The notes under the pieces are model-generated. The model did not search any database and was not told where the DNA came from. It was given only the letters and a program-made list of their open reading frames with translations. DNA of 64,000 nucleotides from Oopsacas minuta (Eukaryota; Animalia; Porifera): assembly GCA_024704765.1 (NCBI GenBank), contig JAKMXF010000359.1, positions 69,381 through 133,380 on the forward strand, read 5' to 3'. Each line of letters begins with the position of its first letter. Within the stretch, counting starts at the first letter, position 1. Below, one piece after another: positions 21,353-60,214 of the stretch. The position numbers and the translations under genes are program-made.

Positions 21353-23519
21353 TTCGGCACAGGTTGTATTTTTCTATTTTTTATTATCATTATCAGTTAC
21401 CCATAAATTCTTTTTAGTAAATTTTAAATGATGACGTCATTTTCCCACATTTTGCTGTGTTCTCAAAATTCTAGCAATTTTTTTGAAATCCACATTGTCG
21501 ATTTCCTACCATCCTTCAGACCATTATTTCGCAACAGAGATACAGGCTGCGTCAGTGCCGCTGGCAATTTTTCACGATGGCGCCTGCCTCTCATACTCAG
21601 TATATTGGGTGGCTCATTTAATGACGATCTGCAACATTATGGTATACATTTTTCCTCTTCTATTCATTCATATTGTACGGTAATACGAAAGTATTTGATT
21701 TCTTATGAAATATTCCAAAAATTCTGTTTTGATTTGTCATCTCTGAGTTAAAAAGGAATGATAAATTGGATCCACAAGTATAATTCTAATAGTTATAACC
21801 CAAACGCAAATATCAAACACAACCGCACAAAATTTGCTCCTTCAGTCTTCGTTTTGTATGGTAAACATCCTTATTTGAGCATTGTGGAAATTTGTATATA
21901 ATGTATCGAAATTCGTGATTCATAAACTAATGAAAATTCTAATTATGTAAGAATTTTTTGCGGGCCGCTTAATGTATTGTGGACCCCTGTAGTAGACAAT
22001 CCATTTTAGAAAGTCTATAACAGATTTTCCTCTATTATATTTAATTTTAGAAACTGTTTTCCGTTTTTCATAAGTTTCTCGTTCTCGGGTACATAATTAC
22101 GTATATAGTCTTCTATTAAGTAGACCAAGTATGGTTAAAGTAACTTTCTTCCATCAAAGATATCACTGATTTAATTCGTTCAATTCCACTAACCCGAAAC
22201 ATGTTTTTTGAAACTTAAGTATCATGGACTTATACTCTGAGGCTTTGGCGTACTCTTTTAATGCAGTTCTTGCGGGCAACAGTTTATAGAGAATCAAGCA
22301 AAAAATAGGAACTTCCATGAGTTGTAATATAATTGCATACAAATTCCTAATTCAAACGCTGATATTAATATCAACAATAATTAAATAGAGAGAATCCAGA
22401 CTTCATCTAGAGCTAGCCTACCCCGCACCCTGGATGTTCATATATTCAATTACCCGCACCCTAGTTTATTAAGAACATGGGGATAGCACCTGATGAAGGT
22501 CAGATTTCGCGCACCCTCATGAATAGTTCTAAAAGTCACGCACCTAGATAAAGGCTTGAGAGAATCCCTTAACGCCTGCAAAAACGATTCATAGTCACAA
22601 AGTCTTTTGGCTCAGCAAATATTTATACGTATATCTTGGAGGGAGTAGCGAGTGGACCAAAATTTAGAATGCGGCCTCTTTTGAGTATTACCCAGGAGAA
22701 AATTCGACTGTACAGGGCTTGTATTGCGCTGTTACCAGGTATATGATTGACAAAGGTTTGTAGGTGCGAACTGTGTGAAAATACTGATTTAAGCTGATTA
22801 AAGTATATATTTATATATCAGAAATTGACCAACATCTAATGTTATGATTTGGCCAACAGCCGTCTAGAGAAATCTTGGAGGTTTATAGCCCACACGAAGA
22901 CCTTATGTGGCGACGACCCTCTAAATAGCCTATAAACCATTAATAACCAGATTTTTTTACTACAAGTTACCTCAGGAAGTAGCCATAGGTATATCTGATT
23001 TATATGATATCTCCATTTATTTCACGTATATAACAAGATTAATTGAATTATTTCGGAGAAAACCATATGCACATCATCATCGTGCTCGCCAGTATACTAC
23101 GAGATTTGTGAATTTCGCTTGGCGCAACTGCAACCTCATAAAGATAAATTCAGCCTCTTACCCCTATCAGTGGCCGCGGGGTAGGCCTTACCACCGTGAA
23201 GCATATAGCATTTTCTGAATGTGGTCTAAATAGGTGAAGATCATTGTGCTCTAGAGTAAGAAATGTCTTTCTATGGGAATTTTAGGTATCACCAGATATA
23301 TTATAGTATTTAGACCTTTTTTGTCAATATGGATTACTCATATTTCCGTTTGGAGAATTTAACGACATCACTCTTGTCTCGAATTTACAGTGTTCTTCAG
23401 AATGAGTTTGCTATAAGCGTGTTCCATTGTATATAGTTTGTTCATTCAGTATAAGTTGGATATATAATGTGTCCCCTTTTGCTATACCATTATTCAGCGA
23501 AAAAAGAGCTTATAGTGTA

Positions 23520-24832
23520 CAGGGTGACAATTAAGTTCTGATCCACGAATATACTCTGTTTATTCCTAAACTAGTTATTCTTTCAATCCAAATTTTCACT
23601 GACAGTTAAAGCATATTATAATAAATCTTCCTATCCAATTCTATTCGATATAACCGCCTTTTGCCTTTACTACAGCTTTAAGTCGTCCTTGAAACCATTG
23701 GACAGATTTACGGAGTTCTTCTTACGGAATTTTCTCCCATTCTATAATCAAAGCCTCCCGTAGAGATTCCAAATTTCCATGCGGAGTAGCGCAGGCTCTG
23801 CTCTGTAAAGTCCCCCAGATGGAATAGTCAAGTGGATTCAAATCCGGACTTGAAGGAGGCCATTCTTCCCTTGGACAAAAAGTCAATATTTTCCCCTAAA
23901 AGCCAGGATTGAGTTGCTTTCGAGGCATGCGCTGGCGCAGAGTCCTGCTGGAAAATCTAGGGTGTGTTTTTGAACAAGGATGAACCAGCAGATTTGATTA
24001 CAGGCTCAAGAATAAACTCTCTTTATATGTTTGCGAGTTAATTTTGACCCCTTGTGGGACAAAAATCAATTTTGTCCGAGAATCTGCTGACACCCCAGCC
24101 CAGACCATCACAGAAAGCGGTCTTTGCACTCGATCGATGAATTTAATGCTCTCAGGGATGTCTTTGCATGGCGACACAATCATTCTATCATTTTGACGGT
24201 TAGTTGCTTCATCTACCGTGAAAATCTTCTCGTCCGAAAACAATATCTGTTCAGAATCTTCATTTATGAGGCGCCACAGAAGCCTTTTGCACCTTTCAAG
24301 TCTTTTTATCCGAAGAGTGGGAGTGAGATGATGAACTGTTTGCCGTTTGAGTGATTTAAGTCCCAGGTCCTCATGTATCATCTTTCGCAATGTTTCGCGA
24401 TTAACAGGGTATTCCCTTGCCATCTTCCGGATTGACCGCCTGGGATTTCGGCGGATTTTACTGCGGAGTTTTTCCCTTAGTGCTCTCGTACGAACTGTCG
24501 CCGGTCGGCCAGAACGAGGCTTGTCCTCCACACTTTTGGTATCGATATATCGTTTAATAGTACGATAAATGAATAATCTGTTGATCTTTTCGTTTTTCAG
24601 ATTTTTCGAAATCTCGCTCTGTGTGCTCCCGTTCATAAATAATGAGATAATTTTTGACCTCTTTACTTCCATGTTGAAATTTCTGATTTTATGCGTATGT
24701 AGATTTAGATTACTGTTTGAGCATAACAGGAAGACATATATGTTAGAATATAAATGATAGAATTATAATAGAATATATTGGAAGCGTATCAGATCTATTG
24801 GAACTATGCATCAGAACTTAATTGTCACCCTG
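23520..24832 (-). mobile_element. DD37D (maT-type) element C, full length, frameshifted
   Basis: TIR cagggtgacaattaagttctgat, TA TSD; ORF 23998-24672 ends in frameshift (ESLFLSL). Confidence 0.93.
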
Positions 24833-26033: not shown

Positions 26034-29000
26034 CAGGCACGTAGCTAGAGCAAGACATTCAGGGGGGCAAGAAGTATTTCGGGAGGGCAATTGCAGGGAT
26101 AAATATTTTTGAAAAGTTAATTACTTGTGTATAACAAGTACGACCCAGTCTCCTTTTCTTACATGTATAACTTTTTAATTCATAAAGTACCAGATTACTA
26201 GGCTAGGGAGCATTAGATTAGTCTACATTATAGTAAGAGCATTTATTAAGATACTAAACTCAATTCAGGGATACTATTTGACATTACAAAAGAAAGCGGC
26301 GGTGCTTCATCTGCTTAAAATGTTCGATCACATCATTATAACAAAGTGTTTCTGCAATATCTTTTTCAATAGATAACAGGGCAAGATGGTTGAGACGCTC
26401 AGTGGTCATTTGTGAGCGCAAACGTGTTTTTATTCTCTTAACAGATGAGAACATTCTCTCAACTTTGCAAGACGTCTGAGGGATAGTCACAAGAATTTGG
26501 TATAAGTTGAAAACATCAGGGAAAATATCTTTGTCAATCACATCCAGTACATCGATCAAAGTATTTAGCTGAGATTCATCTTTCGAGCAATAAACGAACG
26601 GAGAACTTCTATTTCACAATCTTTGATATCTATTGCATACAGTTCAGATAGTGTATTCAATTCCTGTTTGTTAAGAAAGTTTTGAGACCTTGGTAAGCAG
26701 CAATCAGCAGCCTTCATGATGCCTGATTGATCTGTACCAAAACGGGCATCCAATCCTGCTAAGATCTCGCGGACATTTTGGCGTAACAATATTTCAAGCT
26801 CTTCAAAGTTGGATGCGTTTGTGTGTCCAACAGAGCTATTTAGATATCCTTCTCTAAACCTTTCTGGAAGACGCCGTTGCCTGATTGTGTCTCTTACATC
26901 AAAATTTTCGATTTCATATTCACCAGACAAATCTTTGGCATATTCGACAACCTTGTCAAAATCGAAATTGACCAACCTTTCCCTCAGATCGGCAAGTAAT
27001 ATCAAACAAGAAGAAACAGTTGCTGTCGACTTCTGAAAAGCTTTAGTGCAAAAATCAGAGTAATCATACAGCCTACCAAAGTAAACTAAGATGGTCATAA
27101 ATTTCTTTGTTTGTAGACTACCTAGTAAAGATTTAGCTGCTAAACTTGTGTCTGCATCATTATCATTTCCAAATATGCTTAAAGTATCAAGTATGCAATC
27201 AAACCGACGCAGAAACCTTTCCACCTCCAAAGAACGGGAAGACCAACGAGTACTACATGAACGTGCAAGTTCAAGAGCTTGGACGTTGGGGGATAGCGCT
27301 CATCCTGGACGTCTATGAAAACTGCATGTCGCTTTGTTCCATTCATGAACGAATACGTCAAATCCAATATATCAAAGAAAGATTTCATCAGAGGATGTCG
27401 TTCAGCAGTTGCAGCTAATACTAAGTTAAGCCTATGTGAAGCACAATGAACATATGTGGCATTGCGATAACCTGCTCCTTTCATGCGGGCTTGGACACCA
27501 CCGTGTATTCCTGACATAACACTAGCCCCGTCGTAACCCTGCCCTACACATTTCAGAGGATCGAGCTCAAAAGGCTTAAGTAGCTCTATCAGTTTTTCAG
27601 AGATGGTGCCCGCATCCATGTCCTTCAATTCAATAAAGCCAATAGCTCTTTCTCGGACATTACCTTTATGGATATATCGCAAAGAAGCACCTAACAACTC
27701 CTTCTTAGATGCATCTTTTACTTCGTCAGCTAGAATAGCATAACAAGACGCGATTTCTACTTCACTTTTAACATAGTCTAGAAGCACTGAAGCGAGTGAT
27801 GTAAGCAAATCATTTTGAATATCTGGACTTAGCATTTTTGCATTTCCTGGAAGACTTTCTATCCTCTTGGTCACATTGCTATCATATTTTCCTAAAAGTT
27901 CTAATATTTCAAGAAAGTTCCCTTTATTAAGCGACTGATCTGATTCATCATCTCCTCGAAGAGGAATATCTTGTTTGACACAAAAAGTAATAATGTCAAG
28001 AACAGTCATTAAATGTTTCCGATTGTCATCTATGAATTTCTCATTTCGAAAATTGGGATCCAGTTGCTTATCTACCGTCCCTATTATTTGATGAATTGGC
28101 CAGACTTTCTGTGTTTCAACAGCTGCCATATGACACACAGAACTATCGTGCTTCCTGCACTTGTCGCCAAGTTTCCTCCAGTCACAAAGTCCTTTTGTTG
28201 AAAAAGTTGCTTCAGCTGTTGATCCTCCAAAAAGCCGACACGGTTGGCAAAATATAGCATCGAGTTCTTTGCTATACTCTATCCAGGAGAATTGGGCATA
28301 CCAATGAGTACTAAAATGTCTACCGGCCTCATTTTTTGGGAAGATAATAGAAGGCTGCCTCGGTTTCTCACCATTGTTGGACAAATCATTTACAGTCACA
28401 ATTGGTGATTGTATATGAGTCGTGTTTAAACTTGGAGTTGAAATAGTTGTACAAGAATCGGAAGTTAAAGGGGTCGAAACTTGAATACTCGTAACAACAG
28501 GCTCTACCTCCTCATAATTTGAAGAGACGACATGATCTTCGATTTCTATTCGATTTCTTTTAAAATATGCCTGAACTTTGCTTTGTTGTAGTCTTTTAGT
28601 CATCTAGAATTGTTTGAGATACGAGTCACTGAACTGATTGAAGAACAGAAAATGTGAAAGATTTGATGATATAGAATGACTTTATAACTTATAGAGAATA
28701 TCTGAAATTGGCTTCACTCATGTGTAAATTTCAAAACAAGCTTTGAAAACTGAAACCCTAAGAGCATCACCAATGCTTCAATTACTTCAATGGACAGTCT
28801 AACTTCTGACAACAATTACTAGCGGTCGTGGTAATTCAATTAAAATTATAGTCGAAATTCAGTGCCTGTCAAAATAGAACAAGTTTACTATCAATGAGCG
28901 TTACTTCCTGTCTAGTATTAAAACCATCATCGCAACGCGAGTTATTAATTTCATAGTTTTGACGATGCAGTTGAAGTACATAGGCTATTAATTACAGTGG

Positions 29001-29229
29001 AGTTCGCTTATTAGCAACTCGGATTTTGCAGAGATTCGGTTGCTAATAGGACAACGAAATTAACATTATAATCCCGTTTGGGACCCGAAAGCTGGTTGCT
29101 AATAGAGCAATATTACTAATAAGCTAACTACATTGTATATAAAAACAAAACTTCCAAATTTATCTGGGGGGCGAGAAAAACTTTTGGGGGGGCGACTGCC
29201 CCCCCTTGACCCCCGTAGCTACGTACCTG
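26034..29229 (-). mobile_element. hAT element (TTF-type Zn finger / DUF4371 / dimerisation-domain transposase), left copy
   Basis: TIR cagg(c/t)acgtagcta; ORFs 27179-28603, 26565-27230, 26284-26559 (YSKELDAIFCQPC, ILADEVKD, GQGYDGASVMSG, HCASHRLNL, SCKVERMFS). Confidence 0.95.
28995..29135. mobile_element. Decayed Tigger-type MITE carried inside the hAT 5' region (twin at 32916-33056)
   Basis: TA|cagtggagttcgcttattagcaa ... ttactaataagctaactacattg|TA. Confidence 0.7.
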
Positions 29230-32819: not shown

Positions 32820-35800
32820 CAGGTACGTAGCTACGGGGGGGGCAAGGGGGGGCAGTCGCCCCCCCAAAAGTTTTTCCCGCCCCCCAGATAAATTTGGAAG
32901 TTTTGTTTTTATATACAATGTAGTTAGCTTATTAGTAATATTGCTCTATTAGCAACCAGCTTTCGGGTCCCAAACGGGATTATAATGTTAATTTCGTTGC
33001 CCTATTAGCAACCGAATCTCTGCAAAATCCGAGTTGCTAATAAGCGAACTCCACTGTAATTAATAGCCTATGTACTTCAACTGCATCGTCAAAACTATGA
33101 AATTAATAACTCGCGTTGCGATGATGGTTTTAATACTAGACAGGAAGTAACGCTCATTGATAGTAAACTTGTTCTATTTTGACAGGCACTGAATTTCGAC
33201 TATAATTTTAATTGAATTACCACGACCGCTAGTAATTGTTGTCAGAAGTTAGACTGTCCATTGAAGTAATTGAAGCATTGGTGATGCTCTTAGGGTTTCA
33301 GTTTTCAAAGCTTGTTTTGAAATTTACACATGAGTGAAGCCAATTTCAGATATTCTCTATAAGTTATAAAGTCATTCTATATCATCAAATCTTTCACATT
33401 TTCTGTTCTTCAATCAGTTCAGTGACTCGTATCTCAAACAATTCTAGATGACTAAAAGACTACAACAAAGCAAAGTTCAGGCATATTTTAAAAGAAATCG
33501 AATAGAAATCGAAGATCATGTCGTCTCTTCAAATTATGAGGAGGTAGAGCCTGTTGTTACGAGTATTCAAGTTTCGACCCCTTTAACTTCCGATTCTTGT
33601 ACAACTATTTCAACTCCAAGTTTAAACACGACTCATATACAATCACCAATTGTGACTGTAAATGATTTGTCCAACAATGGTGAGAAACCGAGGCAGCCTT
33701 CTATTATCTTCCCAAAAAATGAGGCCGGTAGACATTTTAGTACTCATTGGTATGCCCAATTCTCCTGGATAGAGTATAGCAAAGAACTCGATGCTATATT
33801 TTGCCAACCGTGTCGGCTTTTTGGAGGATCAACAGCTGAAGCAACTTTTTCAACAAAAGGACTTTGTGACTGGAGGAAACTTGGCGACAAGTGCAGGAAG
33901 CACGATAGTTCTGTGTGTCATATGGCAGCTGTTGAAACACAGAAAGTCTGGCCAATTCATCAAATAATAGGGACGGTAGATAAGCAACTGGATCCCAATT
34001 TTCGAAATGAGAAATTCATAGATGACAATCGGAAACATTTAATGACTGTTCTTGACATTATTACTTTTTGTGTCAAACAAGATATTCCTCTTCGAGGAGA
34101 TGATGAATCAGATCAGTCGCTTAATAAAGGGAACTTTCTTGAAATATTAGAACTTTTAGGAAAATATGATAGCAATGTGACCAAGAGGATAGAAAGTCTT
34201 CCAGGAAATGCAAAAATGCTAAGTCCAGATATTCAAAATGATTTGCTTACATCACTCGCTTCAGTGCTTCTAGACTATGTTAAAAGTGAAGTAGAAATCG
34301 CGTCTTGTTATGCTATTCTAGCTGACGAAGTAAAAGATGCATCTAAGAAGGAGTTGTTAGGTGCTTCTTTGCGATATATCCATAAAGGTAATGTCCGAGA
34401 AAGAGCTATTGGCTTTATTGAATTGAAGGACATGGATGCGGGCACCATCTCTGAAAAACTGATAGAGCTACTTAAGCCTTTTGAGCTCGATCCTCTGAAA
34501 TGTGTAGGGCAGGGTTACGACGGGGCTAGTGTTATGTCAGGAATACACGGTGGTGTCCAAGCCCGCATGAAAGGAGCAGGTTATCGCAATGCCACATATG
34601 TTCATTGTGCTTCACATAGGCTTAACTTAGTATTAGCTGCAACTGCTGAACGACATCCTCTGATGAAATCTTTCTTTGATATATTGGATTTGACGTATTC
34701 GTTCATGAATGGAACAAAGCGACATGCAGTTTTCATAGACGTCCAGGATGAGCGCTATCCCCCAACGTCCAAGCTCTTGAACTTGCACGTTCATGTAGTA
34801 CTCGTTGGTCTTCCCGTTCTTTGGAGGTGGAAAGGTTTCTGCGTCGGTTTGATTGCATACTTGATACTTTAAGCATATTTGGAAATGATAATGATGCAGA
34901 CACAAGTTTAGCAGCTAAATCTTTACTAGGTAGTCTACAAACAAAGAAATTTATGACCATCTTAGTTTACTTTGGTAGGCTGTATGATTACTCTGATTTT
35001 TGCACTAAAGCTTTTCAGAAGTCGACAGCAACTGTTTCTTCTTGTTTGATATTACTTGCCGATCTGAGGGAAAGGTTGGTCAATTTCGATTTTGACAAGG
35101 TTGTCGAATATGCCAAAGATTTGTCTGGTGAATATGAAATCGAAAATTTTGATGTAAGAGACACAATCAGGCAACGGCGTCTTCCAGAAAGGTTTAGAGA
35201 AGGATATCTAAATAGCTCTGTTGGACACACAAACGCATCCAACTTTGAAGAGCTTGAAATATTGTTACGCCAAAATGTCCGCGAGATCTTAGCAGGATTG
35301 GATGCCCGTTTTGGTACAGATCAATCAGGCATCATGAAGGCTGCTGATTGCTGCTTACCAAGGTCTCAAAACTTTCTTAACAAACAGGAATTGAATACAC
35401 TATCTGAACTGTATGCAATAGATATCAAAGATTGTGAAATAGAAGTTCTCCGTTCGTTTATTGCTCGAAAGATGAATCTCAGCTAAATACTTTGATCGAT
35501 GTACTGGATGTGATTGACAAAGATATTTTCCCTGATGTTTTCAACTTATACCAAATTCTTGTGACTATCCCTCAGACGTCTTGCAAAGTTGAGAGAATGT
35601 TCTCATCTGTTAAGAGAATAAAAACACGTTTGCGCTCACAAATGACCACTGAGCGTCTCAACCATCTTGCCCTGTTATCTATTGAAAAAGATATTGCAGA
35701 AACACTTTGTTATAATGATGTGATCGAACATTTTAAGCAGATGAAGCACCGCCGCTTTCTTTTGTAATGTCAAATAGTATCCCTGAATTGAGTTTAGTAT

Positions 35801-36017
35801 CTTAATAAATGCTCTTACTATAATGTAGACTAATCTAATGCTCCCTAGCCTAGTAATCTGGTACTTTATGAATTAAAAAGTTATACATGTAAGAAAAGGA
35901 GACTGGGTCGTACTTGTTATACACAAGTAATTAACTTTTCAAAAATATTTATCCCTACAATTGCCCTCCCGAAATACTTCTTGCCCCCCTGAATGTCTTG
36001 CTCTAGCTACGTGCCTG
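32820..36017 (+). mobile_element. hAT element, right copy (inverted twin of 26034-29229)
   Basis: Same TIRs; all three ORF translations identical to the left copy, including two shared frameshifts. Confidence 0.95.
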
Positions 36018-37102
36018 GACTAAATTGTGGATTTAATTGATATTATCGGTGTTTTTGTCTTCCAAACTGCGAGTTAGAAAATATACAATTACCATCTCCA
36101 AAAACATTGACCTAATGAAATCACCTACTTTCATTCTTTTTCAATATTACCTTTTCTATCTGGTAGAACATTAACTGGCGTATTGATTTACACAAAATTA
36201 TTCACTTCCTTCAAGGTATTAATTGCATATAATATGCCTATTGAAAATCATTTTTTCCCGGGTAATAAAGTACATTATTTCATTTTACTTGATAAGTGCT
36301 ACCTCCAATATCAAGGTTATTCTCAATAACCTTGATATTGGATTTAGTGCTCTCATATTATATGTATTTTCAAAATGCCTACAAAAGGGATACCTTTGCC
36401 TGTAAGTTACGCCAATTAATTTTACAGTTTCATCCTCAAATTCCTTAGATATTTTGTTACTAATTTCTATCTCTATGCAAATTATTGCCAGTCAATTTAG
36501 AAATCTCTGATTATTTTATGTTGTAACTTGTTGCAGTTAATTGTAATTGATCTGCCTCATTTACCACAGACTAATTATAGAATGCTCAAGAAGTCTTGAT
36601 TTCAAAATTTCAAAATTTTCATATGGGTAGTACTAGTCCATGTTGTTTAACGATAATATCTGAATTGCTGCTAATCATTCTAATTCTGAGCATTTTATTA
36701 GTTGATCAATTTTATTAATTCCATACATACCTAAGATTGTAGTTCTCAATTGTATAACTAATTCCTAGAATTCTTAGAAAGTTCGTGAATAAGTGCCATG
36801 AACTAGATCGATATCTTTCATCACTTCATTTAGTTTAATGAAACTGATTGTAGAAGATACAGACTCAATCATTGCCACCATGTGCCACTTGTTCCCATCT
36901 TTTTGCAATGGGGGCAATTGAAAAACGTGGTACAATAGTGATACTCGACGTTAATTTTCAAACATTTCAATATCTAATAGAATATTCAAGCATCTTCAAT
37001 TGTAAATTCGGATGTGCCATTGTCAGAACTAGATTGCAACTTCTCATTTAATGCATATCCAATTCTGCAATTATTCGATTTAGTTTATTACTTGTTTTTT
37101 AG

Positions 37103-37287
37103 GTACTGGTGAAGCTGGAAAGACCACATTTATTAAACAAATGAGGATAATTCATGGAGTTGAGTATGACGAAAATGAAATATTAGAGTTTAAAAAAACT
37201 ATTTTTCAAAATATTTATGACGCTATTGCAAAATTAGGAGATGCAATGATTGAGTTCAAAATATCTTATAGGACAAATCTCCCTGAG
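37103..37287 (+). CDS. GNAQ-like: G-alpha exon 2: GTGEAGKTTFIKQMRIIHG...YRTNLPE
   Basis: P-loop and KQMRIIHG; acceptor ttttttag, donor GTAAGT; 185 nt. Confidence 0.96.
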
Positions 37288-37667
37288 GTAAGTGTCTCCT
37301 TTAGAATTTTGATTGCCTATCGTTTCTGAAGTGATATGTGGCAATGTAGTAAGTTCAGCAAATTTGATCATGGATTTGTGACCCCTCCCTCAAGTAAACA
37401 CTTGTATCTATAGAACCGTTGGGTTTTACTCGAAGGATAGTATTTTATCATTGTAGAAATTCATTTCTTCGATTAGAGTTCTAAAATTTGGAAATTCTGC
37501 CAATTATTTTGTCTATATTACTCATTATTTTCGAAATTTTCTGCGTCTTATCTGTATATCCAATGTAATGCTAAAAACTAACATTGAAATCAAATTTTAT
37601 ATTATCAAATGATGTTTTACAAATATACAAATTTATTTTGCATAATTTGCACATTCCTGAATAATTA

Positions 37668-38962
37668 CAAGGGTTGTTCAATAAATAGTGAGACTGTTTT
37701 TCATAATTCATATAGTAACCCGATACTTATCATAATTGATTATCAAATGTTTCGATAAATTCCCCCTTAAACTATATGCATCGTTTCCATCGTTTTGGTA
37801 ACTTTTCCATCCCAGTGTGGTATAGAATTCTTTAGGTGTCCCTTTTTCCCACTGTTTTCTTTCGTACTCCAGCCGTTTGAAATCCTCAAATCCCTTCCCT
37901 CGAAGAGGTCCCCTCATCTCTCCAAACAGCCAGTAGCCGCTGGGAGCCAGGTCTGGACTATGCGGGGATGAGGGAGGCATTCAAACCCTAAGTCGTCAAT
38001 TGCAGTCATTGTCTTGGAGCTTACATGGGGCCTTGCGTTGTCATGTTGCAGCAGTACGCCACGTGTTAACTTTCTCTCGCCTCTCACGTTTATTCGCTTG
38101 ACGCAATTCGTTCAATTCGTCAACGTAATAATCACTGTTCATGGTTGTCTTCTCAGGCAACCAGTCGAGGTGGATAATTCCTTCCCTATCCCAAAGTACT
38201 GTTGTCACTCTCTTCCCTGCTGATTTTGCGGCCTTTACTTTGATATGTACCAGTTCATCACGTCCCTTCCACTGCTTCGATTGAGTTTTACCCTCTGGTT
38301 CATAATAATGAAACCAAGTTTAATCCCCCTTTACTATACGTTCCAAAAGTCTTCCTCTACCAGATATCATGAAAGTAATTCTTTGCTAACTCTGACCCTT
38401 TCGCGTTTTTGTTCTTTTGAAAGAAGTTTCGAGACGCAACGCGCAGTTACCTTCGACATTTCCAGATCTTCAGTAATAATCGAGTGTAGTGTGGCTTTTG
38501 ATATACCTACCCTCTCTTCTAACTCTCGCAGGGTTATTCGTCTGTCCTCCTCGATATTTCTGCGGGTTTTGGAGGAAGTCGCACAACCTGGAAGAGGATC
38601 ATCGTGGCGGACCTTATCGCCATTATCAAAACGTTCGATCCATCTATATATGGTGGCTTTCGAAGGACATTCATCTCCGAAAATATCCTGCATTTCACGA
38701 ATAATGTATGAGTCAGTCTTCCCCTTTTTCCACAGGTACCAAAATATTTGTCGTTTTCCTTCTTTGCTAAAATCCACTAGTTAAAAAAAGTAGCCTATGC
38801 AAATGAAACTTTATACTGAAGAATATGCTAGGAGAGTAAAGAGTATTGTGTATAGAAGTTAGACAATCAAGTTAGGCTTGTAATCTGATATTAGGCTTAG
38901 AGCTGTATTAACTAGAATATGAATCCGATACATTAGTCTTATTACTTATTGAACAACCATTG
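37668..38962 (-). mobile_element. mariner (DD34D-type) element G, defective
   Basis: TIR caagggttgttcaataa; fragments 38367-38777 and 37708-37980; HDNARPH...SPDLAPSGYW (third Asp replaced by Gly). Confidence 0.92.
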
Positions 38963-40081
38963 CATAACCCGAAATCATTGAATTATGATCGAATCAGGAT
39001 AGCTAATTTAAGGTAAATTTCAAGCTTAACATATCCTTGTAGTACAATTAGACAAAGTATTCCATACCAATGTGACCTAATCATGGTTATGCCCATATAT
39101 GGTCATTTCAAGATTGCGAAATTAACTTTAGCGATATCATATCAAACGTATCACAAGTATACGTTAAGTTGGATCCGGAATATATATTGGTTATCCTGAT
39201 TTGACTATAATTTCAACGATTATCGAGTCATATGTTGATTTTGACAAACTTCACCCATGTTCTCTACTGTAACTCAGAAGCGTGCCAACTAATCATAAAA
39301 ATTTTTATCATATTTTCTGTAGAACAATTTACAGATATACATGCGATCGAAGTTAGGTCAATTTAGAGGAATTTATTTTGTAAATTAATGCTTATTAATC
39401 AAATATATTGGCACAAATAGAAAAATTTGCTCTATTGGACTGATGGAATGTATTTCTAACATTATGGTATACTAACTAAGCAGGAAGTGAAATTAGTGCA
39501 TATATGTCTAAAACTGTCTGATGTCGATATAATAAGGATATCACTATAAATTGAAGGTGTTTAGGTAAACCCTGTTATCCACGGACTTCTTAAAATTGAC
39601 TTCATTTACGCTAATGATATATTTCTTGCGCAGAAAGTCAACTGGATAAGGAAATTTGAGAATATTATAATATATGGAAAGATGTATATATCTCATATCG
39701 TACATCCTACAAATATTTTCAGGATACAAATATGACCGTTTGACACATAAAATATGACTTACTAGAGTACAATAATGCATTATTAGTGTTCAGTATTAGC
39801 AGATTCCGGGATATCAAGAAGTTTACTATCCTGTTATGGCCTAAGCTAATCTCACAGTATAACGAAGGCCATGTATCTAAGGACTCTGAACTGGGACATA
39901 AACCAGTATTCACAGATGGTGTCATTCAAGATTGGATCATAAATTTAAAAGATAGAATATGAAGATATTGTGGCATGGAAAGTAGGGATCACACTAAGTA
40001 CATATTTGTAAATCACTTAAAAACAGAAATACAAGATATCCAGTCTTGATTATTGGCAAATTGTACCATCCCCGGTATCTA

Positions 40082-42759
40082 CAAGGGTTGTTCAATAAGT
40101 AATGAGACTAATGTATCGGATTCATATTCTAGTTAATACAGCTCTAAGCCTAATATCAGATTACAAGCCTAACTTGATTGTCTAACTTCTATACACAATA
40201 CTCTTTACTCTACTAGCATATTCTTCAGTATAAAGTTTCATTTGCATAGGCTACTTTTTTTAACTAGTGGATTTTAGCAAAGAAGGAAAACGACAAATAT
40301 TTTGGTACCTGTGGAAAAAGGGGAAAACTGACTCATACATTATTCGTGAAATGCAGGATATTTTCGGAGATGAATGTCCTTCGAAAGCCACCATATATAG
40401 ATGGATCGAACGTTTTGATAATGGCGATAAGGTCCGCCACGATGATCCTCTTCCAGGTTGTGCGACTTCCTCCAAAACCCGCAGAAATATCGAGGAGGAC
40501 AGACGAATAACCCTGCGAGAGTTAGAAGAGAGGGTAGGTATATCAAAAGCCACACTACACTCGATTATTACTGAAGATCTGGAAATGTCGAAGGTAACTG
40601 CGCGTTGCGTCTCGAAACTTCTTTCAAAAGAACAAAAACGCGAAAGGGTCAGAGTTAGCAAAGAATTACTTTCATGATATCTGGTAGAGGAAGACTTTTG
40701 GAACGTATAGTAAAGGGGGATTAAACTTGGTTTCATTATTATGAACCAGAGGGTAAAACTCAATCGAAGCAGTGGAAGGGACGTGATGAACTGGTACATA
40801 TCAAAGTAAAGGCCGCAAAATCAGCAGGGAAGAGAGTGACAACAGTACTTTGGGATAGGGAAGGAATTATCCACCTCGACTGGTTGCCTGAGAAGACAAA
40901 CCATGAACAGTGATTATTACGTTGACGAATTGAACGAATTGCGTCAAGCGAATAAACGTGAGAGGCGAGAGAAAGTTAACACGTGGCGTACTGCTGCAAC
41001 ATGACAACGCAAGGCCCCATGTAAGCTCCAAGACAATGACTGCAATTGACGACTTAGGGTTTGAATGCCTCCCTCATCCCCGCATAGTCCAGACCTGGCT
41101 CCCAGCGGCTACTGGCTGTTTGGAGAGATGAGGGGACCTCTTCGAGGGAAGGGATTTGAGGATTTCAAACGGCTGGAGTACGAAAGAAAACAGTGGGAAA
41201 AAGGGACACCTAAAGAATTCTATACCACACTGGGATGGAAAAGTTACCAAAACGATGGAAACGATGCATATAGTTTAAGGGGGAATTTATCGAAACATTT
41301 GATAATAGTTATATACAAAATTGTGGAACGATTTTGATGATTAAATGACAATAGCTGAAATTGAAGAATTTGAAGGGATTGCTTATGAATGGGTTAAGTA
41401 TATATCCACAACAGGTCTAGAATTTGTAATTTTCTAGTTGGAAGATTGTACCAATATGCGATTAAATATATATGAAATTAAACATACAGTTATGTTTATT
41501 ACCAACTAAATCATATCAACATTTACTATCACTAGTACGCTGTGCTTCCTTGCGCTACGCGGATTCTAACACTTCGTGTCTGTACTCGGCCTTCGGCCCT
41601 CGCTTTCACTATTAGTTTGTGTGATATTCGGATTCAGCGTAACCCGATTACCCCATAATAACCGTTGAAACCACGTTTCCAGGATTATTTTGAAATTTGT
41701 TTACTTTTCGTTTACTTTATATTCATATAAACAACTAAAATTTGTATGACAAATCCATGAGTGTGATTCGGATTCAGCATATTCGCTAACCTTCCGTCAA
41801 GTTTATGAAATTTGTATATTTTCTTGATTAACACCATAGATATATAGATACATGCATTTTTGCAACTACGAATTCCACATTCCATTCCAGCTTCCCTAGC
41901 AACGGACAAACGGACAGACAGACAGATAAACAGATAGCAGCGACAATGATAGTATCTCCATTACTATCATTGTCACTGCAAATGTCCAATATTTCAAATG
42001 GAACTGTGCAGGTAGGTCCTCTGAATGTGGAACTGGCCTAATGGCGGACGGTACGTCTGGTTACGCAATAGTGGATTTATTCTTTATTGTGATACCATCA
42101 ATTTTCGTCATCCAGTAATGACAATCTGAAAGAAGACACATTGGTTCTCTCCATATCATTGGAACCGCAAACGGGATTATATTTCTCTTCCCAGCATACC
42201 ACAAGCGTCTTTCAGGCATTGTGTGCAGCCCACGGCTTATCTTGATCCCCGAGATGGCATCCAAAATTAGCGAAATAACAGTTTTCTACAGCTTTTGTGA
42301 TTTTGTCATTGGTTAGTTGTAGTATACCTCCCACAAATATAACAATACTTTTCGGAGAATTTTTGCAAACCAGAGAAGCCATAAACAATAAAATGAACGA
42401 AATATACTAAATGTCGAGTGGAATAAAACAGATTATAACTACTATTAGAGGCAATTTAGATCATGTAAGCAATGAAACCAAATAAATTGGATGTTGATGT
42501 GTAGAATTGAATTTAGAAATATTTTTGACCATGTGGTCAGCTAAAAGATCGGCATAACTAAAATAGAAATTTCTTACTTTTAGTACCCTCGAGAACGAAA
42601 AACATTGATAATAATTCCCAACATATATCTACACTATGCAAAACACTAGAGAAAGAAGATCATTAAGAATGTTGTATATCAGTGTAATCAATTATGATAT
42701 ATATCGGTTTACTATATGAAATATGAAAAACAGTCTCAGTATTTATTGAACAGCCCTTG
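40082..42759 (+). mobile_element. mariner element H (inverted twin of G) carrying a 1.38-kb Chapaev-derived insertion near its 3' end
   Basis: TA|caagggttgttcaataag ... tattgaacagcccttg|TA; ORF fragments identical to G. Confidence 0.92.
41306..42684 (-). mobile_element. Non-autonomous Chapaev3-type derivative, copy 2
   Basis: Homologous to 10174-11542; TAA TSD (41303-05, 42685-87); the empty site gaTAAtcaattatg is visible in sister element G. Confidence 0.88.
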
Positions 42760-44246
42760 TAAGTGGATATTGACAAAACATATGTCATTTATCGTCTCTC
42801 CTGTTACTCAGAACCGTGCCAAATTTATCATGACAAACCTTTGGATATTTTCTCCAGAAACTGTTTGAATCATTTAGTATTTCAACATTTGATCAAATAT
42901 CAATATTTTGGCTAAATTAGTGTTTGCTATAGAAATATATTGGCACATTTCGAAAGAATTTGCTTTTCCTTACTGATGGTATGTATTTCTTTTGGGAAAT
43001 TCATATTTTCTATGGTGACTTAGCTTATGGTCAGAATCATGGCTTAAGGATATTTATCACATCGAAGGGTACCTGTGATTCAAATTTCAAATTTGATATT
43101 CTACAAGCTGACAATCATGTTTTAATTTCGCCATTGATTGAATTTCCCCCAAGACTCGAACTTGTCCGAGTTGGCCCAAAATACCTATGTATGCTTAAAA
43201 TCTGCCATGGGGGTCTTCCATTCTCTTCTAACAATTCTGGACCTACTAACATATATTACATGCTTAAATTTATATTGAGATTAATTGAGTTTTCATTGTA
43301 TAGATTCGTGTATTAATCGGCTCAGAGCTCATGAAAGTTTATTTCGATCTTTCATGATCAGAGGGAGTTTACTATTTCATGCAATTGTAGTACTTTTATA
43401 TTTCTTCTTTTATGTACCTGCAGTGGAATCCGGATTTATCCTAATTCTTTCCAAAATTTATTTGTCTGGAAGTATACTTCTTATACACTTCCTTGTTTTA
43501 TTTTAATGAAGAGAACAGATATTTCTTTTGACTCACTTTCAAAATTTGTGCTTTGTATTTTTATTTTCATTGATTACAATCCATCCTGGCAAAATTATTG
43601 AACAAGACTGTCTTTGTCCATTACGAATTGCCCTACCGCACATTTTTCCCAATATTGTTTTATTTAGGGCCGATCCCTCGTTTAAGAAGTGTTTTCAATG
43701 GCACTTGTATTTAGCAATAATATTACCCATTCATATGTTATTAATATGTTAGATATCTAAACTAAGTTATACAAGCTTTTTTACTTTGCCCAATGGATAC
43801 CAAGTGGCCCCTTTTGATACAAAGATTTTTGTAATTGAATTTTTATGTTCATTCTTTTATTCATTCTTTTATTCTGCCTTTTGTATGACTAAAATCAAAT
43901 TGTCTATAGCGACTCCTAATGTTTGGAATTTCTTCTTCCCACACAAAATCATGTCCCACAATGGCTGTTCATTTGGAACAATTTACTGCTAACTCCTGAT
44001 TAAGCGAATAGATTTTAGCCATCATTTGGTGTTCGTATTTTCATGTTTCACTGTACTTATTTTTTGTACGGTTAAACCTTCAGGAAGTTAACACTCTGGA
44101 ACAGCCAAATGTTCACATATGAGAGGTGTTCACTTTGAGAAAGAGAAAGTGTGCTCATCTTTTGGAGGTGTTCACTTTTGTACATTTATTTGTACTCCCT
44201 GTTCATCTAATTCAGTTTTGAGTTCTTTTAATGTGTATTTCTTTAG

Positions 44247-44413
44247 GATATAATGAACGAATTGTTTGATGTTACTGGAGCTGGAATAGTCGAATTGCCT
44301 TCAATTATTCCTAACCATCATGTTGATGCAATCCAGAGATTTTGGAGTGATGATGGTATACAAGAATGTTTCCGTAGAAGAAGTCAATTTCAACTCATTG
44401 ATTCCGCACAGTA
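44247..44413 (+). CDS. GNAQ-like: G-alpha exon 3: DIMNELF...AIQRFWSDDGIQECFRRRSQFQLIDSAQ-Y
   Basis: Helical-domain motif W.D.GIQECF.RR..FQL.DSA; acceptor tttctttag, donor GTGAGT; 167 nt. Confidence 0.96.
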
Positions 44414-45109: not shown

Positions 45110-46469
45110 CAGGGTGGGCCGCGGGAAACCGGTTGAAACAAATTTTGTATAATTTCTAAACAAAAAAAGATAAGTCAATTCTGTAAAAAGTATATTAAGG
45201 TTTATAAAGTGATATTATAATTTTCATTTTGTAGAGTATCTATCCACTAATAAAATGCTCGATCCAGCTCCCATTTAAAGATATCACTTTTTGCAATCTC
45301 GTGAGAATATTTTCTGAGACTTTTTTCAGTGTTTCTGCCTTGATCCGTCTTATTTCCCGGCGAATGTTTCTCTTGAGGTCTTCAGTAGTCACAGGGATAG
45401 GATTGGAGTAAACCTTGCTCTTCAGGTATCCCCATAAATAAAAATCACATGGGTTTAGATCTGGGCTGTAAGGTGGCCAAAAGAAGTCACAGTTTCGTAC
45501 GATCAGTTTTTTGTCAAATTTCTCTCTAAGAAAGTCAAGAACAACTTTAGCTATATGTGGGGGTGCGCCATCTTGTTGAAATGTTATACTACCAAGTTCC
45601 TTACGTCTTCTGAGAGTTGGAATGTAGTAGGACTTTAACATATCAAGATATCGGACACCATTCACGGTCACTCTTGACCCTTCATTATTTTCATAAAAAT
45701 ACGGACCAATAATCCTCTTGGAGCCAACTGCACACCAGACAGTGACCTTTTCTTGTGTTAAAGGCTTACTATCAAGTGGATCTGGCTTTTCCTCACCCCA
45801 AATTCTCATGTTCTGTTTATTAACATGTCCAGAAAAGTGAAAATGAGCCTCGTCACTCCAGTCAATATTACCGATGTCAATTTCCTTCTTCTCAACCTTC
45901 CCTGCGATAAGCTTTGCAAAAGTCAATCTCTTCTCTTTTTGGACAGTAGATTGCTTCTGTAAGATATGTATCTTATATGAGAAGAGATTGAGATCATCTA
46001 CAAGAATCCTCCTGACTATTGTCCTGGACAATTGAAGTTCTCTTGAAAGCCTCCTTGATGAACGATGTGGTGAATCGCAAGTTTACGCTTTACTTTTTCG
46101 ATGTTATTGGGGGTCCTCATTGTCTGGCATGGTCCTGGTCTAGCTGTATCAACTACAGTACCATTCTCCTCAAACCTCTTGACAATATTTTTGATGGTAT
46201 CTAGTTTAGGAACAGTTCTAGAGTTATAGAATCTTCTAAATCTTCTCTACGTTGTAACTATGGAACCATGATTTTTGTATTTCCATTTTAAGACATTAGT
46301 CCTTTCTTCCAGTTTCAGCCTTGTCATAACTTCCTATTGATCTAATTGTTAATTAAACACAAAATAGCATTCTTCTAGCTACAAAATGAAATGTTTGCAA
46401 TCGGTAATGGATATACGTGTGCCGAGTTATGATCATTCTATTTCAACCGATTTCCCGTGGCCCACCCTG
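45110..46469 (-). mobile_element. DD41D (rosa/Visitor-type) element E in a TA run
   Basis: TIR cagggtgggcc(g/a)cgggaaa(c/t)cggttgaaa; ORF 45240-46031 with WSDEAHF, QQDGAPPH, SPDLNPCD (41 residues); upstream N-terminus has a stop and a frameshift. Confidence 0.92.
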
Positions 46470-49400: not shown

Positions 49401-50110
49401 TATAGACATCTCATCGGCAAAAACAGTTTGCGCTTATGATTTCTTAGGATACATGTGCTTTCTGGCCCATTTTATTCGAAAGATTTTGGGTTTTTCACTT
49501 ACTAAGGGTGGATTAGATGGATATTTCTTAGTGTAATCGACCGTTTTTAAGGCACGCCAAACGGTTTCATGAGATGGCCTGCCAGGAATAAGATGGGCTG
49601 AATACCTTGTAGACAAATATGGCCTACCTCTAATTTGCTGGGCCAGACTTCTTAGAATGGAGAGTCTCATAGTAGGTGGCCTTCCAGACCCTCTCTTGCC
49701 CCCAAACCAACAATATTTGACTCTCTAGATTTTACTCTATAGACTGTCGCCAAACTTACACCCAAAGATTTTGAAATATCCTTCATAGAAAGTTCACCAC
49801 GTTTTATTAGAACATCCATTGGCTCTCTTTTCTGTTTTTCATTCATAGTTAGATCTAACTGTTTACATTATTAATTGTATATATTAAAACAAATTATCCG
49901 GACGAAAAGTTGAATATTACGTCACACAAATTTCTGACTCCTATCCTAGTGAAAAAATGCCCAAAAAATCTAACAAAGGTCATTAATAAGTAAAAATATA
50001 TCAAGTCAAGTGATTTTGAGTAGTTGGAATCCAGCTTATTACTAAACACTGAGAGTTAATGTGGTAGGATAGTAATATATCAATTTTCTCAATTTTTATC
50101 TTACAGACTG
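46494..50110 (-). mobile_element. Old Tc1 (DD34E-like) relic split by the Chapaev3 element
   Basis: Imperfect TIRs cagtct(a/g)taa(c/g)ataaa; fragments RPSHETVWRAL...RIKWARKH, DNDLKHTSK, WPFQSPDLNPIG; ~1.34 kb after removing the insertion. Confidence 0.7.
46546..48820 (-). mobile_element. Chapaev3-type (CMC) transposon, pseudogenised transposase 46915-48571
   Basis: TAA|cacaggccaacaaaattt ... aaatcttgttgagttgtg|TAA; motifs DNFCCVCG, QDKS*APHVIC, VWREQKNHLDDCYFC, WRLFIDSS, FCCFLCLWDSR-like, LHIKLGLMK, SDEQGERFHQD. Confidence 0.88.
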
Positions 50111-52699
50111 TATATTTTTCATTATCGGATATTTTTGAGTGACATTGTTGCTACAGTACAGGCATCGAGATCTGTTAAATTTGTCTTGCACTGCTGCTAC
50201 TTAAGCTGTAAGATGATAATTTCTAGTACCCTTACCTCCTAGATGTTGCTCAGATGTCTCAATATCTTCTAGATGTTGCTCTGGATGTTTTTAAGCAATA
50301 TCTAGTTACTTATTTTGATATTTATTGTATTAGTTAATGAAATTGCTTCAAATTGTAGTATTGGTGATATGTTCCACAATTCTTACTCTTTTTAAGAGTT
50401 TGGCCTTGGATTAGTGTCAAAATGCCTAACAATGCAATGTTTCTCATGTGTGTTTCTACCTCTTACATGTAGCCCTGTGTGTTTTGATCAAAATTTTGTT
50501 ATTTTATGGGATTTAAACTTATATGTTCTAGTATTTTCTTCCAAATTTATCCGATCCCTGGACCGTTGTTATATATTATTCAATTCCAGTATTTGTACCT
50601 TACTCCATGTTCAATTTCTAGTATCCCGTTAATTTACTTTACCCACATACTAAAGCCTTTGAGTCTCATCTGCTTCAATCCTAAAATCCTGCAAATTTAA
50701 CCCCATTGGCGACTGCCCCAACTCATTCCAACATGTCCTTGCTCTAATTCATTAACAAAATTTAATATTTCCACATCCTACTATACTTAGGACCCCAAAA
50801 CTCCTTCAGGATTTGTACCTTGGATGTATCTGTCTGGTTAAGTATTTCTGTGTTTACTATATTTCCATACGTCCCATTTTGACCGAATACATGTATTGCA
50901 TATATGTAGGACAACAAATATTATCAACCAATATAAGTGCATGCTAAAATACTTCATCATTGTGTCAATATATTTGTCTAGTAAGTATTTATCTGACAGA
51001 ATGTGTCCTTCCTTGATGTATTGTTGAACGTTAAATATTGGATATTTCATGCTTTTATATACATCGACCAAATCTTGAAGGCAAAAGTTGTCTCGTTCTT
51101 GAGTTACAGCACACAGCATATCTCACACTTTACTATTATATTATATAGCGATAATCGTGAATGTTTTTGCTCATGCAGGATAGCCAATTCATTGTAAATT
51201 TCAGACTTCCCATGACCGTATAATACATTTGATGTGATATATCTCTTACAAAGCGACCTAATTGCTACTATGCTCATATATTGTCATTTTGTTACATTAC
51301 GCTATATTATTCAGACATATCACATCGGAAGTATTTTGAAGATGTGGGCGGTTGACTATTTTCCACAAATTGGCCTTCCAGATTTAACAGTGGCTCATTC
51401 CCTTATAAATGAATTGGTTGATACTTTGTTGTTCTACATAAATGCTATCCATTTTTCGAGCAAAAATGAACAATTTCTGGTATATAGAAACTGCATGCAA
51501 ATACTCCGGTCGACACGTTCATCCCTGGCCCATAATGCTAAAAGAGTTGGGGGCCTTGTGTATAACATATAATTCCTAGTTTCAATTCAGTGATTATCAA
51601 TTCTAGGTCATTCAAACTTATTGCGGGTCATGTGGTGAAATCTAACCTAAACACTATGCATTAATTGCAGTTACAATTATTACTAATTCAAATAATCCTC
51701 TTCCACTCCTACACACTGTTTTTTATGTGGGTAGAGCGACGCTCTACCTACTTAAACACTCATTTATGTACTCTTCTTCGGGATAGATTTAAATTTCTGG
51801 TCCAGGGCCGCTCCTAGGGTATGTGGCGGGACAAACTCCATACCTTAAAGGTAGATTTAGTTTTGGAGAATAGGAAAAAATCGCAAGGAGCTAGGTCTGA
51901 TGAGTATGGAGGCTGTCTTATTAAATCTAACCCCTCTGCGTCCAAGAAATTTTTGTGAACTTAGTTGCCTAACGAGTATAATTATTCTCAAGGGAGCAGG
52001 AGCATTCGTCTGGAATTTCTGCTAATTGTTCTCTGAGTGTATGCAAACATCGTATTCTGTATTCTATTTGAAATGTCACAATATTGTAATGTAACATGTG
52101 CAGGTCCGGTGAGAGGGGGGTTTAGTGATCCCAATGAACCGGATTGCGTGGCAAGAGGGGGTGTTAAAGATTGAAATTGTTATTACTGTATATATTTATG
52201 GTTGGGTTCAACAGTCAAGTGAAGTTCTTGTGAACTTGTTATTGTGTTACTTTGCTAGAATATTTGAAATTTCAATTATATTACAAGTAATTACTACGAC
52301 TTTACATTTAATAATCAATATTTAATTGAGTTTTCTCCCCCAAATCATTACAACTTAGTGAATGTTTATTTGGTTTATTATTTACAAGTCAAGTAAATAA
52401 TCAATTTGTGACACCATTATTTTTATAAACTCCTTGAATACACATATGGTATACAGACTATTTGATCTTGTCGCCCAAATTCGGGATTGCCCTTCGTTTC
52501 TCAATCATGGCATTCATTTTCTGTTAATTATAGCGAACAATGTTACAATACTTGTTCTAGTAGTAAAACGAGTAGAATTGAAATTCTATAATTTGAATAA
52601 AAAATCCTCACTCGAAGTACTATAAATTTCATCTGTACTTGTACTGGGACGTAGTTATGCTTGCGAACTATCAAAATTTATTCATCTAACCTTGTTATG

Positions 52700-57123: not shown

Positions 57124-58438
57124 CAAAGTGACAGTTAAGTTCTGATGCATAGTTCCAATAGATCTGATACGCTTCCAATATATTCTATTACAATTTCTAT
57201 CATTTATATTCTAACATATATGTCTTCCTGTTATGCTCAAACAGTAATCTAAATCTACATACGCATAAAATCAGAAATTTCAACATGGAAGTAAAGAGGT
57301 CAAAAATTATCACATTATTTATGAACGGGAGCACACAGAGCGAGATTTCGAAAAATCTGAAAAATGAAAAGATCAACAGATTATTCATTTATCGTACTAT
57401 TAAACGATATAACGATACCAAAAGTGTGGAGGACAAGCCTCGTTCTGGCCGACCGGCGACAGTTCGTACGAGAGCACTAAGGGAAAAACTCCGCAGTAAA
57501 ATCCGCCGAAATCCCAGGCGGTCAATCCGGAAGATGGCAAGGGAATACCCTGTTAATCGCGAAACATTGCGAAAGATGATACATGAGGACCTGGGACTTA
57601 AATCACTCAAACGGCAAACAGTTCATCATCTCACTCCCACTCTTCGAATAAAAAGACTTGAAAGGTGCAAAAAGCTTCTGCGGCGCCTCATAAATGAAGA
57701 TTCTGTACAGATATTGTTTTCGGACGAGAAGATATTCACGGTAGATGAAGCAACTAACCGTCAAAATGATAGAATGATTGTGTCGCCATGCAAAGACATC
57801 CCTGAGAGCATTAAATTCATCGATCGAGTGCAAAGACCGCTTTCTGTGATGGTCTGGGCTGGGGTGTCAGCAGATTCTCGGACAAAATTGATTTTTGTCC
57901 CACAAGGGGTCAAAATTAACTCGCAAACATATAAAGAGAGTTTATTCTTGAGCCTGTAATCAAATCTGCTGGTTCATCCTTGTTCAAAAACACACCCTGG
58001 ATATTCCAGCAGGACTCTGCGCCAGCGCATGCCTCGAAAGGCAACTCAATCCTGGCTTTTAGGGGAAAATATTGACTTTTTGTCCAAGGGAAGAATGGCC
58101 TCCTTCAAGTCCGGATTTGAATCCACTTGACTATTCCATCTGGGGGACTTTACAGAGCAGAGCCTGCGCTACTCCGCATGGAAATTTGGAATCTCTGCGG
58201 GAGGCTTTGATTATAGAATGGGAGAAAATTCCGTAAGAAGAACTCCGTAAATCTGTCCAATGGTTTCAAGGACGACTTAAAGCTGTAGTAAAGGCAAAAG
58301 GCGGTTATATCGAATAGAATTGGATAGGAAGATTTATTATAATATGCTTTAACTGTCAGTGAAAATTTGGATTGAAAGAATAACTAGTTTAGGAATAAAC
58401 AGAGTATATTCGTGGATCAGAACTTAATTGTCACCCTG
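57124..58438 (+). mobile_element. DD37D element D, inverted twin of C
   Basis: Same 224-aa frameshifted ORF with 5 aa differences; TA TSD; 5' TIR decayed (caaagtgacagtt). Confidence 0.93.
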
Positions 58439-60214
58439 TATTTATCACTAAAAAATGCTTTGACAATTACATTTTATGCTCAGTACGAATCTGGTGGTTG
58501 ATGTGATTTTGAAAGGTTATTGTTTTGAATATCTTGTGTGATTGGCCTATAGTCGCTATCATCAAGTAATTTTCCAAAGTCCGTAATTTCTCAGCTTTGG
58601 AACAGTGATTTTGACTGAACGGGTTCGAATTACCTTCAAAACAATTGTTCTCATATTTTATCTACAAGTACCTTAACACCGTATTTCCAGCTTTATTTTC
58701 AGGGTTTAGTACCAGACTTACTACGACGACTCTGGAACAGGGTTAATTTATGATAACAAATTGTTTGATTTTTTATGTCGCACTAACCTTTGAATCCATG
58801 GTATAAATATTGATATCAATGGATAAAGTCATTCATTACAGAGTTTCACAATTGGAGTATTGCTTTTCCATATTTGCTAAGTTACCACTAGATTACGACT
58901 TTTCTGTCTGGAAGTAATTTCAAGATATAGACTGTGACAAAATATACTATTTAATTTTGTTAATACAATAAAATTTGGATATTTTAACACATCTTTGCAC
59001 GAATAATTTGTTAACACTGTAAGATTTATGGTATATCCGTGTCTAATTTGGATTCTATGAATTTGAAAATTCAGTATCAGATTTCCTATTTAGAGACCAA
59101 ATGAAAATGAAGAAATTTTTCAATCCATGACATCGTGCCACTTTTCCATTTACAGCCATTATGATAGCTTTCACTAAGACACACTGGGTTTGAAATTTCT
59201 ATTCATACAGAATTCTAAGAATTTCCTTAGGATTGATTTACAATTGTGAACATTGATTCTTTGGTATTTATGTGGTATTTATGTAATTATTCATTAACAA
59301 TTACGTGCTTTCTTTCTATTCTATAAATATATTGGAAGTTTCGATAATTGCAAATATTTTGCGTTCATTTCAACTATATTATTGCACCAATTTTTCATGA
59401 TATTTACATCATATCCTCTCAATTAGTTATTCTCACAAGTTCAGATGATCTTATGGTGCGTCATAGAATTTCGGGATCACACTAATCCTCTTTTGGCGCT
59501 TCTTCGTTGCTCGCTACAAGGTTACTCGGTCTACATTCAGAGTTATTGATGGATTAGAAAGGGTTACAATTCCACCCACAATTAGATTACACGCTGCACT
59601 AACGGGCAGACGACAGTTCATTGAGCGCTCTTCATTTTTGAAGTCGCTCCCGCTCTGAATAAGGAGCAGCGCTCGCTCCTTACACAAAAACGCATTGCCC
59701 TCCGGCTCCCGCACCGAGTAAAAACGGTGCTCGCTCTAATTGTTCTCATTTTCATCCTTTCAGATTTACATGAGATTTGTATTTAAGTAATCAGGGGGGA
59801 GATAACCATTATACATTCGAGAAATTACCAAATGTGGAACGTCAACACACTTCGATACATTGTGAATTTTACAAAAGTGTCCCAGCATCTATTTTTAATC
59901 AAATGTTTACTGAATTTTCTGCAGAATATCTATGAACTTTGTGAATTGTTTGCAATTATGTAGGTCCGCGCTCCTTTAATGCTCTGGAAACGACTATTCA
60001 GTCTGGGCTTGCTTTACAATTTTCAGCTACAGCGACCTTTCAAACTAATGTCATTCATCTATTGTGTTTATATACTTATATAATCATACTTTTAGTACTT
60101 AAATAGTCCTTCTGAAGTCATTTTACGCATTTTTGCATTTATTAGATCATCGTATAATCATTGTGCAATATTTTTTCTTGATTATGAACTACCACATTGA
60201 ATTACCATCTTGAG

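Follow-up and report, generated by a model that had tools for sequence, protein, structure and literature searches.

Exchanged flanks around a pair of inverted mariner copies in a G-protein alpha intron of the glass sponge Oopsacas minuta

A mariner pair inside a G-protein alpha gene

The DNA analysed here is a stretch of 64,000 nucleotides from the glass sponge Oopsacas minuta (assembly GCA_024704765.1, contig JAKMXF010000359.1, positions 69,381 to 133,380 of the forward strand), referred to below as the window. Within it, two copies of a mariner transposon, designated G and H, lie in opposite orientation on either side of a 1119-bp spacer in an intron of a G-protein alpha gene, and both are bordered by pieces of a palindromic repeat, designated Z. 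The flanks of the two copies are exchanged, such that turning the spacer round restores an interrupted Z arm at each of two junctions. The assembly searched comprises 61,460,524 bases on 365 contigs, and the window has a G+C content of 36%; the published O. minuta assembly has 365 scaffolds, about 61 Mb and 36% G+C (PMC10280926).

Exons of the gene, which is on the plus strand, were located by a genome search with the Pfam G-alpha family (PF00503). The mariner pair and its spacer fall wholly inside the intron between the first two exons given below, with about 170 nt between the exon end at 37278 and the start of the outer flank of G. The initial annotation had assigned the pair to intron 2; the intronic position stands, there being G-alpha exons on both sides, whilst the ordinal number rests on an unseen first exon. 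As the event described below is confined to the intron, the coding sequence and protein should be unaltered by it. Pfam G-alpha positions 84-107 are unaccounted for within 37279-44300, which points either to exons reaching past their local matches or to a small exon within that interval. The exons and the parts of the mariner pair are as follows.

37093-37278, plus strand: G-alpha exon upstream of the mariner pair (PF00503 positions 25-83; genome search E=1.3e-12; score 55.1 bits, exceeding the cut-off)
44301-44411, plus strand: next G-alpha exon (Pfam positions 108-142)
62842-62973, plus strand: further G-alpha exon (Pfam positions 144-187)
37666-37667: TA at the outer end of G, read directly
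37668-38962, minus strand: mariner copy G, 1295 bp, with a broken transposase frame; 3′ end outward, 5′ end to the spacer
38963-38964: CA in place of the expected TA duplication at the inner end of G, one transition
38963-40081: spacer between G and H, 1119 bp
40080-40081: TA at the inner end of H, read directly
40082-42759, plus strand: whole of mariner copy H, with its nested insert
40082-41306, plus strand: 5′ 1225 bp of H, with an HTH_48 (Mos1) domain in the open reading frame 40267-40677
41307-42684, plus strand: nested non-coding repeat inside H, 1378 bp, with a TAAT duplication at 41303-41306 and 42685-42688
42685-42759, plus strand: 3′ tail of H, 75 nt, with 6 differences from the 3′ tail of G
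42760-42761: TA at the outer end of H, read directly

The element has the features of a mariner: a length of 1295 bp, terminal inverted repeats (TIRs) of about 28-30 bp and a TA target-site duplication (TSD), which borders G and H at three of their four ends, CA standing in its place at the inner end of G. The base adjoining the 5′ tip is A in 25/28 copies of the family. The Mos1-type helix-turn-helix match in the open reading frame of H has E=7e-9, and Transposase_1 (PF01359) was recognised in two better-preserved family copies, L037 and L042 (E=4.7e-16 and 3.5e-22). Motifs resembling conserved mariner blocks are also visible in the element. The transposase frame is broken in both G and H. 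At least 43 matches to it were found in the genome; the nearest to G and H, besides each other, is 95% identical and most are 86-89% identical. The nested insert, which splits H at element position 1220, belongs to a family with at least 50 genome matches (799 first-look candidates), the nearest being 93% identical among the matches listed.

Flank exchange at both junctions

Z is a palindromic, foldback-like repeat with dozens of copies genome-wide. Its arms are paired head to head (minus/plus) at many loci, and full copies of about 1.8-2 kb run from the reverse complement of an extension, X, and the reverse complement of Z into Z and X. The arms of the Z/X family, which is seen for example at loci L003, L016 and L022, vary in length. 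A profile of 416 nodes, representing one arm, was built from 29 loci elsewhere in the genome, and no sequence from the window was used in it. Around the mariner pair the following parts of Z were recognised.

37450-37665, minus strand: outer flank of G, distal part of an old degenerate arm, Z3 (nodes ~412 down to 219; 2-2.8 bits alone)
38965-39096, minus strand: Z2L, proximal part of a Z arm (nodes 180 down to ~53; 67.2 bits, E=2e-20), ending exactly at the mariner
39097-39465, plus strand: Z1, the complete opposite arm of the same Z element (328 bits; palindrome centre about 39096/39097)
39466-39928, plus strand: X, distal extension of the Z1 arm; X follows Z likewise in full-length family copies
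39910-40079, plus strand: right end of the spacer, proximal part of the degenerate Z3 arm (nodes 44 to ~214; E=0.019 in the window, 2.8e-4 in a targeted test)
42762-42990, plus strand: Z2R, distal part of a Z arm, completing 38965-39096 (nodes 183-407; 88.5 bits, E=6.7e-27)

Three other copies of Z are present in the window (5584-5908, 13360-13938 and 50958-51388).

The initial annotation had proposed a 1.1-kb inversion here, on the grounds that the TA duplication is uninformative and that the exchange can instead be read from the interrupted Z repeat. The profile bears out this reading of the repeat. The reverse complement of 38965-39045 aligns to Z1 at 39150-39233, and 42762-42990 aligns to Z1 at 39234-39457 in direct orientation, so that Z2R and Z1 now lie in direct rather than inverted orientation, as had been noted. 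When the spacer is turned round, the two halves of Z2 abut exactly: Z2L ends at node 180, the TA occupies nodes 181-182 and Z2R starts at node 183. The restored first junction, consisting of the reverse complement of the left end of the spacer, the TA and the outer flank of H, gives a single profile match over nodes 26-407 (174.6 bits) with no indel, and around the junction it is closer to the family consensus than is Z1. TA is found at nodes 181-182 in 43 of 53 Z family copies, and 45/51 have no indel across this point. A hand count likewise confirmed the ungapped match of 21/26 between the restored stretch and the opposite Z arm that had been quoted with the proposal. Collinearity of the Z consensus with the present junctions had been named as the outcome that would overturn the inversion; in the event, it is the restored junction with which the consensus lines up, and the present ones are not collinear with it.

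The reciprocal junction, to which the initial annotation had not appealed, adds support. Joining the right end of the spacer, a TA and the reverse complement of the outer flank of G gives one match running through the junction (16.7-17.6 bits), and corresponds to an older contiguous Z arm. None of 300 dinucleotide-preserving shuffles reached this score, the maximum among them being 1.0 bit. Moreover, the two halves of Z3, extrapolated separately, agree to within 1-2 nodes on one TA of the consensus (nodes 215-216), for which the chance is about 1%. Un-inverting the spacer therefore heals both interrupted repeats. Taken in its present order, the locus implies a deletion of 36 nodes at G and a matching duplication of ~32 nt at H, exactly as expected if the partners were exchanged between two arms struck 34 nodes apart. 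The summed profile scores are 192 bits for the restored order and 169 bits for the present order.

Other routes to the same end were less informative. Pairing the flanks by divergence class was rejected, as consensus identity (70-71% for Z2L and Z2R, 66-67% for the Z3 halves) is too close, although the bit scores differ more. A search for a paralogous empty site for the flank of G gave none, 37430-37665 occurring once in the genome, and a search with the right half of the spacer returned copies of the X repeat, none of which continues across the site where the mariner inserted.

History of the two copies and origin of the flip

Differences between G and H were polarised against 28 copies of the mariner family. 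The 5′ part of H differs from G by 4 substitutions and a 1-nt indel, and these are unevenly placed: there are 4 differences in the first 245 nt, whilst all 975 of 975 sites at element positions 246-1220 are identical. Past the nested insert, the last 75 nt carry 6 differences (against 0/975 in the interior, Fisher p=1e-7). This disparity shows that the arms exchanged sequence by recombination, through arm-to-arm gene conversion with a tract ending at the nested insert, where heterology begins. The tails of G and H share 2 derived bases that occur in 0/28 other copies, and they diverge by 8%, against a family mean of 12% for the same stretch. On the strength of these shared states and that divergence, G and H are sister copies that split long ago.

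The inner part of G has derived states in its TSD and at positions 4, 23 and 131, and that of H has them at position 245 and as one extra A at 816. In the 3′ tails, five sites are derived in H and two in G. The initial annotation had suggested that, once the spacer is turned back, the two decayed TIR tips belong to one insertion and the two intact tips to the other. The polarity it assumed holds, as the T at position 4 at the inner end of G and the C seven bases from the outer end of H are both derived with respect to the 28 family copies. The pairing of tips describes the sequence correctly but carries no statistical weight as evidence for the exchange: derived states divide 9 vs 4 if the copies are paired as chimeras (p=0.27) and 6 vs 7 if they are paired as they now stand, and neither division is significant.

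With the assembled order taken as real, the flip probably arose by homologous recombination between the inverted mariner copies. Two dead sister mariners would have lain in the G-alpha intron, oppositely oriented and with about 1.1 kb between them. The target of each would have been a TA within one arm of a palindromic Z repeat older than itself: the TA at nodes 181-182 in the Z2 arm for one, and that at nodes 215-216 in the degenerate Z3 arm for the other. A crossover within the 1.2-kb inverted copies would then have flipped the 1119-bp spacer together with the inner part of either element. Because each TIR would have kept its own flank, the two halves of a Z arm would end up beside different elements, wrongly oriented to each other. 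The flip may have happened more than once. Homologous recombination is the likeliest route because the same arms demonstrably exchange sequence. An inversion by ectopic recombination is expected to have its copies in opposite orientation and their flanks exchanged, with nothing deleted or duplicated, and to leave both copies chimeric; after hybrid-element insertion the product is alike, except that the copies are not chimeric (PMC2775673). Here, two homologous copies in opposite orientation stand at the breakpoints, and the flanks are exchanged without deletion or duplication, both restored Z arms being contiguous at a TA.

That same topology could also be the outcome of a one-step aberrant transposition, either hybrid-element insertion or sister-chromatid transposition (PMC2775673), which would have made the second copy and the inversion together when a single mariner at one TA, its ends drawn from two chromatids, inserted at the other TA. 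Such an event would need one prior insertion instead of two, and it would suit a pair of sister copies whose shared, unique derived states reach into the tail that escaped conversion. However, no feature at the locus requires it, and the arms recombine (0/975 against 6/75), so crossover machinery acts at the locus. To our knowledge, aberrant transposition has been documented mainly for P, hobo and Ac/Ds, and not for mariners. For these reasons we regard the one-step origin as rather unlikely, and infer that a crossover caused the flip. Cutting by transposase at both inner ends followed by re-ligation of the reversed spacer, which would likewise leave G and H non-chimeric, was set aside as unsupported. 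Doing without an inversion altogether is very unlikely. It would call for unrelated mariner insertions in separate Z copies, with local damage that happens to mimic an exchange. Mariners do target TA, Z is TA-rich, and the Z arms are homologous to each other, so that the present flanks too are roughly collinear with the profile. Nevertheless, independent insertions would have to be joined by the ~36-nt deletion at G and the matching ~32-nt duplication at H, whereas the restored order does without both, meets a TA at each site and has the higher summed score.

A different kind of doubt concerns the assembly itself, since the genome may truly be un-inverted, with a mariner in each Z arm, and the near-identical arms mis-phased. 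Several observations weaken the case for a flip by crossover. The arms contain identical stretches of 570 bp and 404 bp that must have been bridged correctly, in a hybrid build from 150-nt Illumina paired-end reads, mate pairs and PacBio reads by SPAdes, followed by SSPACE and Pilon (PMC10280926). The spacer and the flank 37430-37665 each occur once in the assembly, with no alternative haplotig, and an exact 31-mer from the spacer had no match in metagenome contigs, a collection that possibly excludes the records of this genome. Scored alone, the halves of the second junction reach just 6.7 bits (right end of the spacer) and 2.0 bits (flank of G). Finally, any chimerism of G and H, which would set recombination apart from hybrid-element insertion, is masked, as the interior was homogenised and each terminal difference is private. 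Against an assembly artefact, the PacBio reads and mate pairs in the build (PMC10280926) would easily span 0.4-0.6 kb, although contigs made from short reads cannot cross the identical stretches of the arms. The stretch is continuous and without a gap, and the arms are uncollapsed, with distinct alleles at five sites, a distinct tail and the nested insert. Moreover, SPAdes usually breaks a contig over guessing at an unresolved repeat. An orientation error is therefore possible but less likely than a true inversion.

Neighbouring repeats, known systems and wider meaning

The introns of the G-alpha gene are full of DNA-transposon remnants. A Pfam scan of the long open frames in the window for host exons returned transposase fragments only; DDE_3, Tc5/pogo helix-turn-helix and Tc3 helix-turn-helix domains were found in frames 3-848, 2882-3511, 45240-46028 and 49437-49724. 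Upstream of the exon at 37093 lie inverted twins at 26034-29214 and 32837-36017, 3181 nt each and 100% complementary, with a 3.6-kb spacer. A further inverted pair, at 23518-24762 and 57195-58440, belongs to a different, Tc1-like element (HTH_Tnp_Tc3_2 match); its copies are 99-100% identical, stand 32-34 kb apart and enclose the exons 37093-37278 and 44301-44411. Exons inside and outside this pair are all on the plus strand, and the Tc1-like pair is therefore not currently flipped. One G-alpha gene thereby contains three inverted twin pairs in a nested arrangement, formed by hAT elements in the intron upstream, by the mariners, and by the Tc1-like elements around two exons. The initial annotation had called the mariner event a second, independent inversion, and its independence of an inversion between the hAT twins is reasonable given the different element family, the separate segment and the position on opposite sides of exon 37093-37278. 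As for the 1.38-kb repeat nested in H, three other copies are found on the same contig (10170-11548 and other places) with 91-93% identity, and many of its matches span only query 22-648 or 662-1400, a pattern that suggests two modules.

In its assembled order, the event is an instance of a well-known kind, an ordinary transposon-mediated micro-inversion. Large palindromes, such as those of sex chromosomes and the inverted repeats of organelles, combine arm-to-arm gene conversion with flip-flop inversion. The G/H arms resemble these in being kept identical (0/975) with divergence just outside the tract (6/75), and in enclosing a spacer that a crossover could flip. They differ in scale, with transposon arms of 1.2 kb and a spacer of 1.1 kb, and a single orientation is seen here, any recurrence being conjectural. 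The Galileo inversions of Drosophila buzzatii (PMC2775673) share the inverted copies of one family at the breakpoints, the exchanged flanks and the lack of anything deleted or duplicated. Unlike those cytologically visible inversions, the present one measures 1.1 kb and sits in one intron. Moreover, its TA duplication is uninformative, so that interrupted host repeats take the place of TSDs as the record of the exchange, the chimerism of the copies is masked, and a single arrangement is known, from the assembly. Hybrid-element insertion and reversed-ends transposition, as described for P, hobo and Ac/Ds (PMC2775673), also yield an inverted segment, two inverted copies and exchanged flanks. However, that model predicts copies identical at birth and needs an active transposase, whereas G and H are dead and old, and it does not require the recombinational homogenisation that their arms show.

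Taken alone, a 1.1-kb intronic flip between dead transposons is of little weight. The locus is of use as a method: where a 2-bp TA duplication cannot record an exchange, the profile of an interrupted host repeat can, and in this case it healed both junctions. It also offers a clean local example, in an early-branching animal, of inverted transposon copies that were homogenised and apparently crossed over. For annotation there is a caution, in that a possible genome-wide pattern of inversions flanked by twins needs validation at the level of reads before it is counted as biology. Whether this glass-sponge genome is unusually prone to micro-inversions between inverted transposon twins is a more speculative matter, and we consider it doubtful. 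If it were so, the cause could be intrachromatid recombination that occurs often in mitosis, or a transposition that makes twins in one step. In that event the three twin pairs of the G-alpha gene would keep flipping and homogenising, and the mariner locus would be a readable example of a genome-wide process.

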